Shown piece after piece: positions 5,388 to 58,589 of a stretch of 64,000 nucleotides of DNA (the first letter of the stretch is position 1; every line of letters starts with the position of its first letter). The notes beneath the pieces were generated by a model that saw only the letters and a program-made list of their open reading frames with translations, was not told the origin of the DNA and searched no databases. Made by a program: the position numbers and the translations under genes. Origin of the DNA: Asterias rubens (lineage: Eukaryota); assembly GCF_902459465.1 (NCBI RefSeq), contig NC_047065.1:21390001-21454000 (forward strand). The letters run 5' to 3'.

Positions 5388-5716
5388 CTGGTCGTTGCCA
5401 TGGAGCCCTTGAAATGCTACAGTAGAATTTACAATTTCCTTAAAGAGTGCCCTTTACAAAGGAGAAAATGCCTTGGTGCCCCGCCCTTCCAAACATTAAT
5501 CATACAGACTACAAAACTAGAAACCAGTGTTTTGGGGGTGAAATGCTCAGTAACTACTAGCCTTGACCGAGGTGTCAGTGTTTTATTTTCATTTATTTAT
5601 TTGTTTCTTGTTTTCCCTTTGCGCTATTGCGCTACCTGTCCGAGCTAGGTGTAATCTCTGTAATGTATACACACAGTGCTTGCGTGGTGTGCTGACTGCC
5701 TATGTATGCAGACAGT

Positions 5717-50739: not shown

Positions 50740-52407
50740 TGATTTTTCTGCAGTAATTTGTTTCTTTATATGATGAGGATCGCGTTTTAGAAAAGTCTGA
50801 ACTGGGAAGGACAAATCTGTCAAATGGAAAGTGTGCACAAGCTTTTAAAGGAAACTGTAGTATTTACATGTACTGTTTTGTAAATACCATCAGTACACAC
50901 TACTGTATTTTGGGGATGTACATGTATATGGATATGGAAAATGTCATTTTTTGCCATAAATGATGATGTTTTTAAGAAACTGCATAAATCACTCTGAGCC
51001 AAGGAGAGCTTCTAGAGGCTACTTTATACACTCATCTCTACATATTGTATATTAACTAATTTGAGATACTTGTGATTAACCTAAGGGGCACTTTTGATTC
51101 ACGGTCAATACCTTCCCTGTAGAAGGAAAAACAACAGTTTAAAAAAACCTTGGTCCTTGGGTGGCACCTCACCCCGTCCCGCCCTCGGCTATACTGCTGC
51201 TTTTTTTGTGTTTTTTTTAAGAAAGTGTTGTTTAGTTGTAAGGATATACAGAAATTTCACAACCTCCTTAAAGCAATATCACTTTGGAATAAAGAATTTC
51301 CACAATTTCAGGTCGTTTACACAAGTGTTTTATTGTGTTACTCATAATTACAATGCTCCATCTTTCATGCACATATCACTTTGTTATACATTACAGTTAT
51401 TATACAACTAGTTTGTCAATTCCTTACAACTGAATGAAACAATATTTCAACTTTACTCCCAGGGTTGGACGTGACAAAATAAATCTAGACTTGGCGTCTG
51501 TTGGTATAGTAAGGAAACACTCAATCGGTCAGGAAAACCCAACAATTCTTCTTTTCAAATTACTGATAGAAATTTGTTTGCGGTTGGCAGGTTTCTGAAT
51601 AAGCGGGGAGCGATAATAAACTTATCTAGCTAGTTGGGGTCACAAAGATACATTACAAAAGAAATATATGGTCAGAAATTATGCTTTCTGAAAAATTTTA
51701 GTTCTTGTTTTTGTTACAAAAAAGAAACAGGGGGGGGAAGGTCAAGTACTTGAGGAGAAAAACACAAATTTAAAACTAAAGAACGAAACAAAAAATTTGA
51801 ACTGCATTTTGTTAGAAAAAACTGCATGAATAACAAGCGTACATAATATAACTAAATAAATCAAACAATCCATAAACAAACCAAGATATTTGATTCAATC
51901 AAAACAATATAAACCAGAAATGTGTTAATATGTGAAAATAAGCAAGAGTATAAGGTTTCACTAAATAAAGTATAGACAATAGATTTATTGTCTACGGTAC
52001 TTAAAAAATAATGATCAAGAACAACAAAAAGGTTTACAAATGTTCACACACTCCAAGTGAACAAAGAAAAGTGAACAACAAATGTTTTTGAACATGTTTG
52101 AAAATGAAATAATGGTAAAGATTTGGCAATAATACAGCAAAAACAACCGATGAAAAGGGGACTTGTGCCTTCTTAAAAATATGCCCAGAAATATATTTTT
52201 AAAAATTATGTGGGTGATTTTTTATTAAAATTTAGAGTTGTTGCTTTACTGCGCTAATAGAAGTTTGCAATATATTCACATACACCAGTGAACAGATGAG
52301 AAATGTTTCAGGTCTGTTGAGAGAAATTTCCAATTGCTTCCTAATCACATGTCAGACTCGAGACAAAAGTCGACAGCGACTACAATGCCATCCGTGCCCA
52401 AGCACCT

Positions 52408-52588
52408 CCCCAATGCCCCAGGATCCTGAGTTCCCCAATGCCCCAGGATCCTGAGTTCCCCAATGTCCCAGGATCCTGAGTTCCCCAATGCCCCAGGATC
52501 CTGAGTTCCCCAATGCCCCAAGATCCCGAGTCCCCCAATGCCCCAGGATCCTGAGCTCCCCAATGCCCCAGGATCCTGAGTTCCCCAA
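52408..52588. repeat. 25-bp minisatellite (CCCCAATGCCCCAGGATCCTGAGTT) x7
   Basis: Seven adjacent units with few substitutions and no spacers. Confidence 0.92.
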
Positions 52589-52966
52589 GGCCTTGGACTT
52601 CGCTCTTGACAGGCACTGCAATTTACCTCTAGTTTAAGGGGCATGGCGATAGACCAATCCATTAAGCTCCGCCCCATTGCGTATTGACTAATCACAACGC
52701 AATGAAGGTCGGACAAATAAAGTCCGACATGCGTGCGCGTATACTTGGCGCACTCAGCAGAGTTGTGCTGAAAAGCATTGGAGAGGCTCACGTGTTGTTG
52801 CTCACACGTGCGTCATGGGCGGAGCCTACTGGATCGCTTTATTTACCTCTGGTAAGGTGTACTCTATGAGGACAATTTTAATTTGTATTGGAACTTTGCA
52901 AATGGGTACCATGCAGCAATTGTTTTGGGTGCCGTGGTTAATTTCGGGGGCCTGTCTCTCTGCTCT

Positions 52967-53133
52967 CTAACTGAGTTCATCGTAAAGGACATTCTGTTCA
53001 TTGTCTGCTACCGCCAGCTCTGCAGGATCATCAACATAGATTTGTGTCTTATGGCCAATGGCCACGTGCTTCATCAACTCCCATGCATCGTCTGCCTCAT
53101 CCTTGCAGTAGGAACAGATCCACTGGGAGGGAC
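52967..53133 (-). CDS. Alternative distal terminal exon of the hnRNP C-like gene (zinc finger B)
   Basis: Acceptor TCTTATCCGACAG, phase 1. Encodes GPSQWICSYCKDEADDAWELMKHVAIGHKTQIYVDDPAELAVADNEQNVLYDELS*. AATAAA on - strand at 52838-52843. Confidence 0.8.
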
Positions 53134-56100
53134 CTGTCGGATAAGATTATGGATCACCTTAAAGATGTAGATTGATCGACTTAACATACAGGAGGACATC
53201 ACATAGGGCCTTTTAGAGGTGTATTCCTCTTGGACTTTAATGAAGTAGATTTTTTAAGTCCATCGGATAGATCCGAGTTTGTTTGGCTGTGGCTCTAGCT
53301 GATTTTGGTAATGGCTTCTACTTAAGCAACATGGCTTGAATATGTATTGCTATGTTCCAACCATAGCCCAGCCGGAACTTTGACTTTGTCAGACTGGACA
53401 GGAAATAGTATTGCCCCTTTGCAGGACTTTCGATTCAAAATATGTAAAGTTTCAAAACATGGCACCTGGCTTTTTCAGTAGCATTGATTCCTAGCATTGA
53501 CTCAAGAGTTCTGTCCGAATTTATAACAATTAGAAATGAGAAGGAGACGAATGTAGACTGTGTTGGATGAGGCAGACCAGCTTGTTGGGAGTTGATGATG
53601 GCGGCTGACGAGTCAAAAGATTAGCTTTGCAAGCTTGACGTCCACGGGTTAAAGTATCCATGATTTTAGGATTCAAAGTGGTCGACTCTCCACCTGATCA
53701 GTAATTTGTTTTGCTGGACCATCAGTTGGCTCAGGGGAGAAGCAATCAAAACTGATGCTCAGAGTTAAGTTGTCAAAGTCTAGTTGTACTCCACCTAAAT
53801 GAACACAGTTGTATTTTTTTAAATAATTTCCTGGAGATATCAAATCGAGACACGTGACTTTTCGGAATCGAACTGCCGTGTCCATGTACTGCCCTTTATT
53901 TATTTTTTTCATTGCTATGAAATTAATTGTCTCAAAGTATATCTCATTGAATGGCATAAATCTACAGTGCCCTTGATCATGCTTTGCACAATCTTGTCCA
54001 CTTTGTGTCATTCCATCTCACCATGAAAACAGATCAACACAAGAATTGTTAAAACGGGGTCACATCACAAAAAAGGATGAATAACCGACTTGCAAGATTT
54101 CCCGATTTCAAACAGAAGCTAATGGACTTCCGTTTTGATCTTGAAACAAATTCAAACCCCCCCCTTCCTAAAACCCCTCTCCAGCCCATCGTCTCCGCCG
54201 TATTGTCTTCAGTCATCCATGAATATCTGCGTGTGATGCTCCTGAGCCACGTGTCTCATCAACCCCCAACAACTGTCTGCCTTCTCTTTGCAATAAGCAC
54301 ACATCCACAAGGGGGGCTCTGTGTGGGTTCCAGGGTAGAAAAACAGGTGGTCATTTATTTTTACAAGAGTCTCTCCTCCCGACTCGTTTCCCTTCGCACT
54401 TTAAAATATGCAAGAAAGGGGCTTCCCAGTGGAATGACAACAATTTATTTATATAGGAAGAAGAGATATCAAATTTCTCGTTCAGTTTTTTTTTCCAATA
54501 CTTTTCCTTATGTGGAAAGTTACAGTGCTATGCAAAATGAAAAAAGTCTCATACACTGTACACGTATAATGTACATACATACGCCTCTCTTAATATTTAT
54601 GCATGAGGTACGTCACAATGCTTACCCAAAACGAGGCGATGGGCGCAGCCACTGCAAGTGATGGGGGAAGTGCGCCCATAGCCTCATTTTGGATAAGAAT
54701 TATGACGTCATGCATAAGTATTAAGAGAGGCGTATACAGGACATTTTGTAGTGTCTACTAGAACAAACAGTGCAAGGGCAGATCTGATTTTGACAGCTAC
54801 ATGCGTACTTGAGTGTATAATGATGTAGCGATCAAGCAGCAGCTGTAGCCCCCCCCCCTCCATTTTGGACACGGCCGAAATCTTTATAGAAAAAGTAACT
54901 AGAGGGCTGCATGTTTATCCCCAATCGAGTTCCCTGCACACAGTAGCAGGGCTGTATTTCACAAAGAGTTAAGTCTAATCTTATCTAAAGTAAGGATGAG
55001 TTACTCGTTCCAACCTTAGACTGGTGGTTTTAAGTTTTCAACAAACTCCTTAGACTAGTCTTTGTGAAATCAACCCCATGAGTCGTAATGTCTTTAAGTT
55101 TGATCTAAGCCACTTACCCTGTCCATCAAATTGTTGGGCCTTCCTCCCTGAGAAAGTCTTCTGTTTTTTGGCTGCTGGTGGGCCAGATGGAATAATGACA
55201 GGGAGACTAGCTGGATCAATGTAACCACTATCAACAGAGATTGTTAAGATGAATCAACCCTTATATTGACTACAGTAAAACTTATTAACAAAAGATGGTT
55301 TTGGTGGTTCAATCTTCCGTCTCATAACATTGTCTTCTTCATGGTGTTAGCCCAGTGGGTGTCTGGTGTTCTTTTGAAAACCTTTGGACACCTTGTTTTA
55401 TCTGTCATTTACATCTACTTGTATTGTAAGTGATCAATTTGGACATCCAGTTTTAAAATTTCCAGCAAATTTAGACACCCTTTTACCAATCCTGGTTGCC
55501 TTGTTCTTCTCAATGTTCTTCAAATCGAAGAATGGCATAAAATATCACAAGCCACTCTCAAACTTCTCCTTCCAATAATAACAACTCGAAACTCAACTTG
55601 GCAATTATTTTCCACATTTTGATACTACATTTTAAGTTGTACTGGGCCCAATTTCATGGCTCTGCTTACCGCTGAATTCTGCGCTCACGTGCAAGCGCCA
55701 TGTTACTAGGCATTCTACGCTTACGAGGCTAGCGCCAAATTTTTGCGCTAGCCTCGTAAGCGGAGTACGCAGGCGCAGAAGCCAAAATTTGCCGCTAACC
55801 CGTGAAACACGCTTGTCATAAGCACAGAATTCCCTGCTTCCATAAGCGCCGATTCTGTGCTTACTGTAAGCAGAGCCATGAAATTGGGCCCTGGTCCTTT
55901 TGTTTCAAGCTTACCTGCTTACAGTTCCCTGCACTCTCTTGAAACCTTTTGGCCGGTTGGGATTTGGTTCACTAGCAATTCTTACATCTGAAGGAACAAT
56001 TTGAAAAGGGTGTGGTTGAAAATGTACATTTTGTAGTGTTAGAACTAAAGAATAATAAACCAAGAGGGAAACTGATAATTAACCCCCGTCAGTTTTCCTT

Positions 56101-57004
56101 GTGGTATATTACTTGATATTTGTTACCAAAAAATGTTGCATCCACTGGATGTGGCTTCCCAGGTTGTGTTGTGAATAAGGTGTGATCCCTGGTTACACGG
56201 CTGCTAACGGTTGTACGGCTTCCGACTATTGCACCCTAAAGCTATCATATTGACCAAATAAAGAGACCACTAACATAGGGCTACATAGCTCAGCTAGTAG
56301 AGTGTAGGTCCCTAGTTCAAATTTGGATCTAGTAAATTTGTCTTTGTTCAAACCTTATTAGGTGTTTCTGAGGGTAGCTTGTGCTAACCAGGCCTGATAT
56401 AGTCCATAGAGGCAATGAAGGCAATTGCCTCTTTGCCCATGGTCATTGCCTTGTTGCCCTTGAAATGCTCCAATTTACAATTTCCTCATATGGTGCCCTT
56501 TACCAAGTAAATGCCTTGGTGCCCTTGCCACTTTCAAAAACGAACCATACAGTCCTGCTTTAATGCATAATAACATGATCAAACCATAGCCTTACCTAGG
56601 GGTTGTCTAGCAAGGACGGCTCCATATTCTCCTTCCCTAGCTTGCCTGGCATTGAGCTCATTGGTGTACTGCACAAAGCCAAAGCCCTCGTGGATACTGA
56701 TCCCGGTAATCCTGCCATACTTGCCGAAAAGCTTCTCAATATCCTGCTGCTGAACGAAGCCCGTGTTAAGGTTCCCGATGAAGATGCGCGAAGCCTTGGA
56801 CTTCATGTCGTTGAGGTTCGTCACGTTGCTGATGCCGGGGGTGAGCTGGGAGAATTGATTGGCGCCGCCGTGGGCGCCTGCATTGTGGGGATTCCCGAAC
56901 GGGCCTCCGTGTCCGTGACCACCCTGTGGATTGCTAAAACCACTGTGCTGGCCATGACCAAAGCCGAATCCACCTGGATTATGGCCTCCAAACATACTGT
57001 TCAT
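52967..57004 (-). CDS. HNRNPC: hnRNP C/RALY-type RRM protein with C-terminal C2H2 zinc finger (distal-exon isoform, 252 aa)
   Basis: Exons 57004-56596, 55987-55915, 55227-55118, 53133-52967. SNVTNLNDMKSKASRIFIGNLNT...HEGFGFVQY...DVRIASEP matches the hnRNP C/RALY RRM. It has an N-terminal G/H/F/N-rich low-complexity region, a basic AKKQK motif, and a last exon encoding CSYC-x12-HVAIGH. Probably the co-orthologue of HNRNPC/RALY/RALYL. Confidence 0.85.
53565..53598 (-). promoter_or_regulatory. Putative intronic RNA docking element complementary to both zinc-finger exons
   Basis: The - strand reads TCATCAACTCCCAACAAGCTGGTCTGCCTCATCC, the reverse complement of codon stretches in both exons (54256-54282 and 53071-53102). 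Confidence 0.6.
54209..54318 (-). CDS. Alternative proximal terminal exon of the hnRNP C-like gene (zinc finger A; isoform 233 aa)
   Basis: Acceptor ...GAACCCACACAG, phase 1 like exon 3. Encodes EPPLWMCAYCKEKADSCWGLMRHVAQEHHTQIFMDD*, paralogous to the distal exon. AATAAA on - strand at 53895-53904. Confidence 0.8.
54580..54735. mobile_element. Foldback MITE (ATACGCCTCTCTTAATATTTATGCATGA TIR)
   Basis: Inverted arms; second copy at ~8020-8200. Confidence 0.65.
55645..55890. mobile_element. Harbinger-like MITE, CTG TSD, in hnRNP C-like intron 2
   Basis: GGCCCCAATTTCATGGCTCTGCTTAC...GTAAGCAGAGCCATGAAATTGGGCC. Confidence 0.75.
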
Positions 57005-58589
57005 TATGTAACAGCCTTACTGTCAGTCGGAAAGAACAAATGAATATATATGTTAATTAAAAAAAGAGGGTTAGTGGCACACACACTTTCATCAGCAAAA
57101 AAATTATAAAATAACAATCAAAAAGATTGTAACCTCAACATTCTCTTTCTTGAATATTCTATAAAAATCCCTCTTTGAGCTCCAACAAAAATTAAGTTTC
57201 AGACCTGGTAGATGAACTTTTTTCATAAGATAATCCTAATGCAACACTAAAAATAATGACCTGTTTTTTGTCTGGAAATTAACCACTTTATTGTTTATTT
57301 GTTCATTGATGACACCAGTTCTAAATTCCGGACTGAATACAAAAAGTACTTGGTATCTCATGCCATATACATGTAGGTTGTGGGCACCAACTTGAATCAA
57401 AAGTCCCACCCTCACTGTTTTAGTGTCTGTTGATGTGAATATACAGGCAACTTCTTTTATCCTTGCAGGTTTCTTCTAATTCTCTGTCACTGTTGTGTGT
57501 GCAACCAGAGAACAAAATCAATCAGCAGATGAAAACAGGTCTACTGAGCGTCAAGATCCCACAAATTGTAATCAATAAAAAAAATCCTTATGGGTAAACA
57601 GAAACACTTGACACAAGAACAATCTGACAAGGTGATTAAGATTCGGATCTAAAATTATATCTGGCCCCGAAAACATATTCGTAAGTAAATGCACAAAAAT
57701 ATAAAATAATAACACTAGTGGCAATTGGAGTACTGGTGGATGTACAAAAACTGTAAGTATCAGTGTTGGAAACAAAGGCAACCGATAAATTTAAAAAATT
57801 GAGAAAGACTTCATTTACAAAATAAAAGATATAAACACCAAATAAATAAATAAATTGAATAAAAATACTCACTGTTAGAAAAATGTTGTTCAATAAAAGT
57901 CAGCTATAAGGATCCCAAAAAAGGCTCCAAAAAGGTTGCCAAAAATGTCACGTTGGTAATGAAAAAAACACTGTAGGTAGATATAAAACAGAATAAATAG
58001 GAGCAATAAACAAAACAAAAAAACAATAAATGTCCTATTGTCTATCTTGACACTGTGTATGCAGATAGATAACGAATAAATAGGAACAATAAACAAAATA
58101 AAAAACAACTATAAATTTCCTATTGTCTACTCTCGACCCGCCAATAACAACATGAAATGACAAGTAAAAACTACCCAACAGTAATAAAATAAAAAAATTA
58201 GAAGTTTGAATTATACAGAATCAGGAGAACCGTCCAAGTGCTTGGTAAAATATAAAGTTTATAGTTTTAGTCAAACTTACTGTTAGTTTAAAAAAAAACA
58301 CACGCGGGTGTTGAATGCAAATTTCCAGTCACACGCTGCGACTGATGCCACGCTCACCATGTTGGTGGTCATTAGGTTTACGTGTAAACGCCGCGTCGCC
58401 CAAAAATGTGCACTTCACCGAATAACATACGTTCTATTTCTATGGTCAATACGCACAAATTTACCACAACTTTACAGTGTTGTAGCATTGTGTAGCCATA
58501 CCTCAAAAAGGCTTATGGAGGTAAGATGTCCACATGTACATTTGGAAAAATGCACACCTAAGACTAAGTGTCTACTCCAAAAGCGAAAC

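Follow-up and report, generated by a model that had tools for sequence, protein, structure and literature searches.

How can one small gene offer its protein product two different zinc fingers for the same position, and what decides which of the two is used? The question is raised by a minus-strand gene lying in a window of 64,000 nucleotides (nt) of the starfish Asterias rubens (NC_047065.1, positions 21,390,001 to 21,454,000 of the forward strand; the window is the whole stretch of DNA that was analysed, and positions given below are counted from its first letter unless a chromosome record is named). Over the 6 kb compared, the window agrees in every base with the A. rubens record LR699095.1. 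The gene is a small RALY/hnRNP C-like RNA-binding protein gene, the product of which is made up of a Gly/His-rich N-terminus, one RNA recognition motif (RRM), a linker with a KKQK motif and one C-terminal C2H2 finger. The original prediction, made from the letters of the sequence, had proposed that this finger is encoded by duplicated, mutually exclusive terminal exons. It is regarded here as very probable that this is a two-isoform gene with ancient duplicate finger exons, the isoform ratio of which may be set at least partly by an inverted element situated between them. The core of the finding is ordinary in kind, and RefSeq already models it in four species; those automatic models carry no annotation of the homology between the endings, of their age or of the inverted element.

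Two acceptors and two endings

Exon 3 (55118..55227, 110 nt; all features of the gene lie on the minus strand) encodes the KKQK motif and ends in phase 1 at 55118 with ...GATGGACAGG/gtaagt (...CAGG/gtaagt, the slash marking the exon boundary), one base being left over at a donor which is common to two acceptors. The proximal acceptor, ...cccacacag/AG at 54318, opens the terminal exon A (coding part 54209..54318), read as E-PPLWMCAYCKEKADSCWGLMRHVAQEHHTQIFMDD-stop, with its stop codon TGA at 54211-54209 and a product of 233 amino acids (aa), isoform X2. The distal acceptor, ...ccgacag/GT at 53133, opens the terminal exon B (coding part 52967..53133), read as G-PSQWICSYCKDEADDAWELMKHVAIGHKTQIYVDD plus a 19-aa tail, with its stop codon TAG at 52969-52967 and a product of 252 aa, isoform X1. 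Either acceptor completes the leftover codon of exon 3 and opens a frame with one C-x2-C-x12-H-x4-H motif, and the two in-frame acceptors expected after a phase-1 exon 3 were borne out, both peptides being exactly as they had been written. The two exons start in phase 1 at the same codon, with their acceptors 1185 nt apart and pyrimidine tracts which are visibly different, and they share 57% amino-acid identity (tblastn E 1e-13) and 69 of 102 identical nucleotides (68%); exactly two copies of the finger exon, A and B, are found within the 64-kb window. The finger-B protein is identical to RefSeq isoform X1 (XP_033625791, P0004) and the finger-A protein to isoform X2 (XP_033625794, P0161) of A. 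rubens, both under the name "heterogeneous nuclear ribonucleoprotein C-like", and an X1/X2 pair with exactly these endings is predicted by RefSeq in A. rubens, A. amurensis, Patiria miniata and Acanthaster planci. The remark that both exons are missed by the track of open reading frames (ORFs) is correct for the bacterial-style ORF list; it does not extend to RefSeq, where both isoforms are annotated.

The use of the two acceptors was examined with the contigs of four transcriptome runs placed on 52300-58200, two runs coming from one organism (organism A) and two from a close relative (organism B) which differs by about 5% in non-coding parts, both being Asterias. The evidence consists of assembled contigs rather than reads, with rough depths and poly(A) sites which are invisible in contigs. 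The joint 55118 to 53133, with GT..AG ends, was seen in three runs at depths of 243 (X1), 40 (X2) and 104 (X3). Those runs also yield a contig, about 1245 nt in length, with its start precisely at 54318 and 30 additional letters (depths of 82, 24 and 77 in X1, X2 and X3); the letters were interpreted as exon 3 overlap, that is, as the joint 55118 to 54318; of the two junctions which had been proposed for checking, the distal one was directly observed and the proximal one was deduced from these contig starts. The contigs starting at 54318 are colinear with the genome as far as 53105, inside exon B, in the three runs, the X1 contig with 0 mismatches, and a second index search found 100% of the words of 53140-54318 in run X1 and 93% in run X2. 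Contig coverage is nil at 54319-54466, upstream of the A acceptor, and upstream of exon 1, and since the upstream intron is not covered, the contigs represent spliced RNA and neither DNA nor pre-mRNA. Both acceptors are used in RNA. By contig depth, isoform B makes up roughly 60-75% and isoform A 25-40% in the three transcriptomes, the B joint being commoner than the A joint in all three runs showing both.

What is chosen is one of two 3' splice sites, which lie 1185 nt from each other, and not one of two self-contained last exons. As A-type transcripts run unspliced from 54318 through exon B, the exon B sequence lies in the 3' untranslated region (UTR) of the A mRNA, and the interval between the exons (53134..54208) is 3' UTR, read through, in the A isoform and intron in the B isoform. 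Strict mutual exclusion therefore fails at the RNA level, where A-type transcripts hold exon B; since exon A is without a donor, exclusivity holds in the protein and not in the RNA. The claim of a single finger per mRNA is accordingly correct for what is translated and incorrect for the RNA itself. An AATAAA had also been assigned to each exon, and the positions were confirmed: overlapping AATAAA motifs at 53895..53904, about 305 nt past the A stop, and a further one at 52838..52843, 123 nt past the B stop. The idea that each exon has a downstream signal of its own was not sustained, since A transcripts run through B and the former site is not conserved. It is a candidate signal with no counterpart at the matching place in A. 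amurensis, and the whole A-B interval of Acanthaster holds neither AATAAA nor ATTAAA. Beyond the latter site, the overlapping contigs X1 records 3 and 2 extend to 52671 at similar depth, which means that 52838-52843 is not the sole 3' end, if it is used at all.

Upstream of the choice, exon 1 (56596..57019, with its ATG at 57004) encodes the Gly/His-rich N-terminus and the hnRNP C/RALY-type RRM (Pfam RRM_1, E 4.6e-11) and ends in phase 1; its span is covered by RNA contig X1 record 6 and gives a 100% tblastn match to P0004 and P0161. Exon 2 (55915..55987, 73 nt, DVRIASEPNPNRPKGFKRVQGTVS) was placed by its splice sites, as read in the sequence, and by tblastn, and contig X1 record 6 holds a gap of 73 letters, equal to its length, between exons 1 and 3. 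The same contig begins exactly at 55118, a branch point of the assembly graph. Since exon 1, 73 letters and exon 3 are joined in a single contig, which ends exactly at 55118, the upstream gene model is fixed. An Rfam search of 52000-58500 gave no match.

Age and maintenance of the duplicate exons

The orthologous loci of A. amurensis, Patiria miniata and Acanthaster planci were compared with that of A. rubens, giving four species. Exons 1, 2, 3, A and B occur in the same order in the three orthologues, where each acceptor is an AG in phase 1 and exon A closes with a stop; the acceptors are spaced by 1196 nt in A. amurensis, 1167 nt in Patiria and 594 nt in Acanthaster. The frames of both exons are intact in the four species, and the stops or frameshifts in related genomes which would have marked one of them as a pseudo-exon were not found. 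Over 34 finger codons the ratio of non-synonymous to synonymous substitution rates (dN/dS) ranges from 0.01 to 0.14 in exon A and from 0.08 to 0.32 in exon B, the between-order dS being near 1; the 19-aa tail of B evolves much faster (0.5-1.1 between orders). This calculation, together with the retention of all ligands, supports the earlier suggestion of purifying selection, by which both finger exons are maintained.

In the finger tree, A and B form separate clades with support of 88/83 and 93/93, and the finger of a nearby paralogue also forms a clade of its own. As the A and B clades are separate, the duplication is older than the split between Asterias (Forcipulatida) and Patiria plus Acanthaster (Valvatida), the finger-coding last exon having been tandemly duplicated in an ancestor of the sampled starfish. 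Each orthologue holds exactly two copies; the starfish paralogue, the brittle star and the sea cucumber hold one, according to a scan of the single-finger loci of the paralogue, Amphiura filiformis and Holothuria leucospilota with 6-8 kb of flank on each side. The annotated isoforms of these three genes differ elsewhere than in the finger ending, and the doubled ending looks, from these comparisons, specific to this starfish gene. A library search for B-type endings in other taxa, made with the C-terminal region of P0004, returned P0004 only, the isoforms of the other species having been obtained from cluster listings.

The paralogue (P0169, 223 aa, hnRNP C-like) lies at LR699095.1 ~21,481,900-21,486,000 (locus L004), about 35 kb away and head to head, with a single finger exon in the same phase as A and B. 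Its helix, SSCWGLVKH, is like that of finger A, while finger B is like the sea-cucumber and crinoid finger (AWELMKH). The shared SCWGL led to the consideration of exon A as a copy of the finger of this neighbour, an origin which is not favoured by nucleotide identity: A and B are identical at 69 of 102 nucleotides and A and the paralogue at 62 of 102. The branching among the three clades is not resolved by the tree.

The fingers and what they may recognise

Exons A and B both encode C-x2-C-x12-H-x4-H, a spacing within the classical C-x2-4-C-x12-H-x3-5-H. Among 15 sequences from starfish, brittle star, sea cucumber, crinoids, hemichordate and amphioxus, the W, L and P and the four ligands are invariant, and so is the core Leu three residues before the first His. 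At the aromatic position, four past the second Cys, the residue varies: fingers A and B have Ala or Val, the paralogue has Cys, and Phe or Leu stands there in the proteins of brittle star, hemichordate and amphioxus. The 15-sequence alignment was used to build an AlphaFold2 model, which shows a beta-beta-alpha fold with a predicted local distance difference test score (pLDDT) of 90.1, strands at 7-8 and 15-16 and a helix at 19-29. The top Foldseek matches to this model are fingers of ZFY, tramtrack, CTCF and ZFAT, with root mean square deviations of 0.7-1.2 A, although the E-values are not significant for a domain as small as this. The starfish fingers fall below the Pfam gathering scores (zf-C2H2_2, 19.4 bits for a cut-off of 26.9; zf-C2H2_4, 16.2 for 27), and the hemichordate homologue is just above (zf-C2H2, 25.5 bits against 25.2); single divergent C2H2 fingers often miss the Pfam cut-off. 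The data fit the assignment of endings A and B to the classical C2H2 fingers, with zinc binding predicted. A link with BCL11 is not established: when the profile of the 15 fingers was searched against the PDB, BCL11A came out at E 0.07-0.11 and was outranked by many other fingers, and a PDB search with the two-finger region of the hemichordate protein found no BCL11 match.

Classical C2H2 fingers usually contact nucleic acid through helix positions -1, +1, +3 and +6. Counted from the start of the helix in the AlphaFold2 model, these positions read S, C, G, R in finger A and D/N, A/E, E, K in finger B, and the difference is fixed in the four species. As the two fingers differ precisely at the usual contact positions, a difference in ligand is a fair inference, and fingers A and B would be expected to recognise different nucleic-acid or protein ligands. 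Different partners for the two isoforms, as had been suggested, are plausible. The accompanying idea of a basic as opposed to an acidic finger was overstated: the KEK of finger A is KVH in Patiria and Acanthaster, and the net charge is -1 to -2 for A and -3 to -5 for B.

An inverted exon fragment between the endings

Within the A-B interval lies an inverted partial copy of the finger exon, 34 nt long (53565..53598), antisense to the K-D/E-E-A-D-x-x-W-x-L-M codons and a candidate docking site. According to inverted-repeat and duplex analysis, this element is able to form 29-33 bp with either exon, A or B, using the same element nucleotides, the paired sites being coding nucleotides ~30-65 of each exon. 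No other part of the interval forms so stable a duplex with exon A or with exon B in any of the four species, the energies of the element being -43 to -54 kcal/mol against a median of about -20, with z values of -3.8 to -9.9 against shuffled sequences. In Patiria the element occupies 5472-5507 of locus L001. Between starfish orders no other block of the interval is conserved (Asterias compared with the other two genera, blastn E 3e-6 and 8e-5, the next best being above 0.5), and in a four-way alignment of the ~1-kb interval the element alone has at least 15 of 30 invariant columns. A fifth starfish sequence, contig L008 (JACSEG010004557.1), carries an element identical to that of A. rubens between flanks which are ~83% identical. 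This contig, of 2888 nt, was found by a pattern search of metagenome contigs and called starfish by its exon B and the ~83% identity; it represents starfish nuclear DNA in a metagenome collection and covers exon B, the element and a portion of the sequence between A and B. A search for an inverted copy around the one finger exon of the sea cucumber, of the brittle star and of the paralogue gave chance-level matches only.

When the whole region from exon A to exon B was folded, the element paired with one of the exons at a probability of ~0.8 in every species. Some pairings are specific to a lineage: the 3' arm CACCTT pairs with AAGGTG of exon A in Patiria and Acanthaster, and CATCC with GGATG of exon B in Asterias.

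What may set the ratio of the two isoforms

What the transcripts show is a splice from exon 3 to either of two acceptors, 54318 or 53133, giving two proteins distinguished by nothing but the finger and a tail. If the proximal acceptor is used, the product ends with finger A and a stop, and everything further down the locus, the exon B sequence among it, becomes 3' UTR; if the distal one is used, exon A is removed within the intron, and finger B is followed by the short variable tail. A mechanism can be proposed in which the element at 53565-53598 would form a duplex of ~30 bp with the coding sequence of either exon, one at a time, and would hide ~35 nt in the middle of that exon from exon-definition factors, with the result that the other acceptor would be favoured. 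Since the energies of the two duplexes hardly differ, helicases or RNA-binding proteins, among them perhaps the gene's own products, could tip the balance. From the duplex and folding predictions we infer that the A:B ratio may be set at least partly by the 34-nt element. The stronger proposal, that the element is a working two-state docking site which sets the finger that the protein gets, is advanced as a tentative and somewhat doubtful one.

Several observations weigh against this account. The predicted partner of the element varies by lineage: the two Asterias species favour B, and Patiria and Acanthaster favour A. Moreover, the preferred pairing in A. rubens covers B, yet B is the major isoform; masking can be reconciled with this only by co-transcriptional folding, in which exon A and the element would be made first. 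The cross-species matrix of duplex energies shows no general advantage of cognate pairs, with only four or five sequences to compare, and the action of the element on splicing is itself a prediction. As regards the transcripts, the joint 55118 to 54318 was deduced from 30 unaligned letters and is outside the 15 joints listed from the contigs, and, the data being contigs in place of reads, some A mRNAs may end at 53895; the evidence for either isoform is at the transcript level. The flip of the preferred partner between lineages and the lack of a cognate advantage in the matrix both speak for an explanation to which nearly an even prospect is given, namely that the element has no role in splice-site choice. 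It would then be either a decaying relic of an inverted partial duplication or a sequence acting only in the mature A mRNA, where the element and the exon B in the 3' UTR would form a long double-stranded stem affecting stability, export, editing or translation, while the A:B ratio would be set by ordinary splice-site strength and protein factors. The element is indeed kept in the A mRNA alongside exon B, and the visible difference between the pyrimidine tracts of the acceptors points in the same direction. Nevertheless, a relic would not be expected to form the sole conserved block in ~1 kb which is otherwise unalignable between orders, nor to be 100% identical where its flanks are ~83% identical.

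The greater abundance of the B joint in all three runs showing both, together with the likeness of finger B to the single finger of sea cucumbers and crinoids (AWELMKH), which makes it look ancestral, could also be taken to mean that only isoform B matters, the proximal acceptor being splicing noise or a way to lower B output and finger A being non-functional. This is held to be improbable, since the frame of exon A, its four ligands and the place of its stop are kept in four species, its dN/dS is as low as 0.01-0.14, the helix residues DSCWGLMRH are invariant, and A accounts for ~25-40% of joints, which is no trace level. Both fingers might, finally, be brought into one protein by a cryptic donor ahead of the exon A stop joining A to B, an arrangement considered because tandem C2H2 fingers are common. 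It is scarcely credible here: no support for it was found, the A-type contig is colinear from 54318 to 53105 with no joint, no consensus donor precedes the A stop in the A. rubens sequence, this stop is kept in all four species, and the RefSeq products are two, each with a single finger.

The gene family

The RRM is of the same type as that of vertebrate hnRNP C, RALY and RALYL, and its best library matches are of that type. A phmmer search with exon 1 gave 306 proteins at E <=1e-10, with 51-64% identity over the RRM, and the NCBI names of the starfish, amphioxus and sea-cucumber relatives are hnRNP C-like or RALY. We take the basic stretch which follows the starfish RRM to resemble that of human hnRNP C/RALY. 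Nevertheless, the starfish protein, of 233-252 aa and ending in a C2H2 finger, is unlike the vertebrate hnRNP C, RALY and RALYL proteins. Vertebrate hnRNP C/RALY proteins have a leucine-zipper oligomerisation domain and a long acidic C-terminus, for which there is no room in the starfish protein, since it ends 36-55 residues past the linker; the amphioxus and hemichordate relatives do carry acidic tails.

Among the 150 best library matches to the RRM, the finger is found only in echinoderm, hemichordate and amphioxus proteins, the other best matches being presumably mostly vertebrate hnRNP C/RALY. The combination of the RRM with W-x-C-x2-C...H-x4-H is present in P0115 (Branchiostoma), P0082 (Glandiceps), P0005, P0013 and P0175 (crinoids), P0173 (Holothuria) and P0170 (Amphiura). 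We know of no C-terminal zinc fingers in vertebrate RALY/hnRNP C proteins, and, to judge from this distribution, the finger may date back to the deuterostome ancestor and have disappeared in vertebrates. An upstream C-x2-C...H...C motif is a further feature of the proteins of the hemichordate and of amphioxus. In Anneissia japonica (P0005, P0171, P0172) the whole RRM-linker module is doubled ahead of a single finger, and the NCBI name of these proteins, "serine/arginine-rich splicing factor 5-like", looks like a misnomer.

Repeats around the gene

A presumed 5' UTR exon lies at ~57840-57938 (contig X1 record 6), and just upstream of it, at 57972-58137, an A-rich unit of 83 nt is repeated 2 times at 84% identity. 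The region 55640-55895, in intron 2 and the first bases of exon 2, is a very high-copy repeat with an RNA contig depth of 20,000-120,000, against ~170 for the exons, and with many alternative joints and loose ends in the contigs; it is probably a transcribed short interspersed or foldback element. In intron 3, an element of ~170 nt (54570-54745) has long terminal inverted repeats (CATACGCCTCTCTTAATA... at both ends) and a contig depth of up to 54,000, and looks like a miniature inverted-repeat transposon. Downstream of exon B, a 25-nt unit is repeated 7.4 times at 93% identity (52407-52592), probably inside the 3' UTR, because contigs of similar depth reach at least 52671; contig depth is at repeat level over 52497-52890.

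Comparison with known systems

Within the literature library that was searched, no paper mentions this gene. The duplication of an exon in tandem, with one copy used per product, is common. What the starfish gene offers is an old and clean case, common to two starfish orders, of an RNA-binding protein with exchangeable versions of its sole zinc finger, in which the differences between A and B lie at ligand-contacting positions and are directly testable by binding assays. In addition, the antisense exon fragment is a compact and testable candidate for structure-guided splice-site choice outside insects and mammals, and one of the species that carry it, Patiria miniata, is used in the laboratory.

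Duplicated terminal exons are known, for example in Drosophila pip (PMC9013439), and the 3' variable regions of Drosophila PGRP-LC, CG42235 and pip are controlled by competing pairings between a docking site and selectors (Pan et al. 2018, PMC6191721). The starfish gene is like these three (PMC6191721) in having alternative 3' terminal cassettes behind one upstream donor and one docking element, predicted here, which would engage in one pairing at a time. It differs in that the selectors of PGRP-LC, CG42235 and pip are intronic and lie upstream of the cassettes, whereas the paired sites in the starfish gene are the coding exons, with the docking element between them; the paired sites being coding, the selectors are not in introns next to the exons, unlike in the definition of docking sites and selectors. 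There are also two choices only, the animal is a deuterostome, and the function is predicted here while it was shown with minigenes in the Drosophila genes (PMC6191721).

Competing pairings also control the mutually exclusive exons 7a and 7b of ATE1 (PMC7797038), and in the model of Ivanov and Pervouchine (2018, PMC6071210) competing structures arise by the duplication of one arm of an intronic hairpin together with an exon. As in these cases, the starfish exons are homologous neighbours of the same phase and similar length, with one per protein, and since they are duplicates of each other, one complementary element can pair with both. In contrast with ATE1 and with the cases of Ivanov and Pervouchine, exon A has no donor, and the element is absent beside the unduplicated exon of the paralogue and the outgroups. 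In their model, moreover, the arms come from a pre-existing intronic stem-loop, while the starfish element looks like an inverted copy of the exon. If the proposed mechanism is true, splicing of this gene would be switched by competing structures in a deuterostome that is not a vertebrate, and two traits would be unusual, the exons themselves serving as selectors and the docking site deriving from an inverted partial copy of an exon rather than from a pre-existing intronic hairpin.

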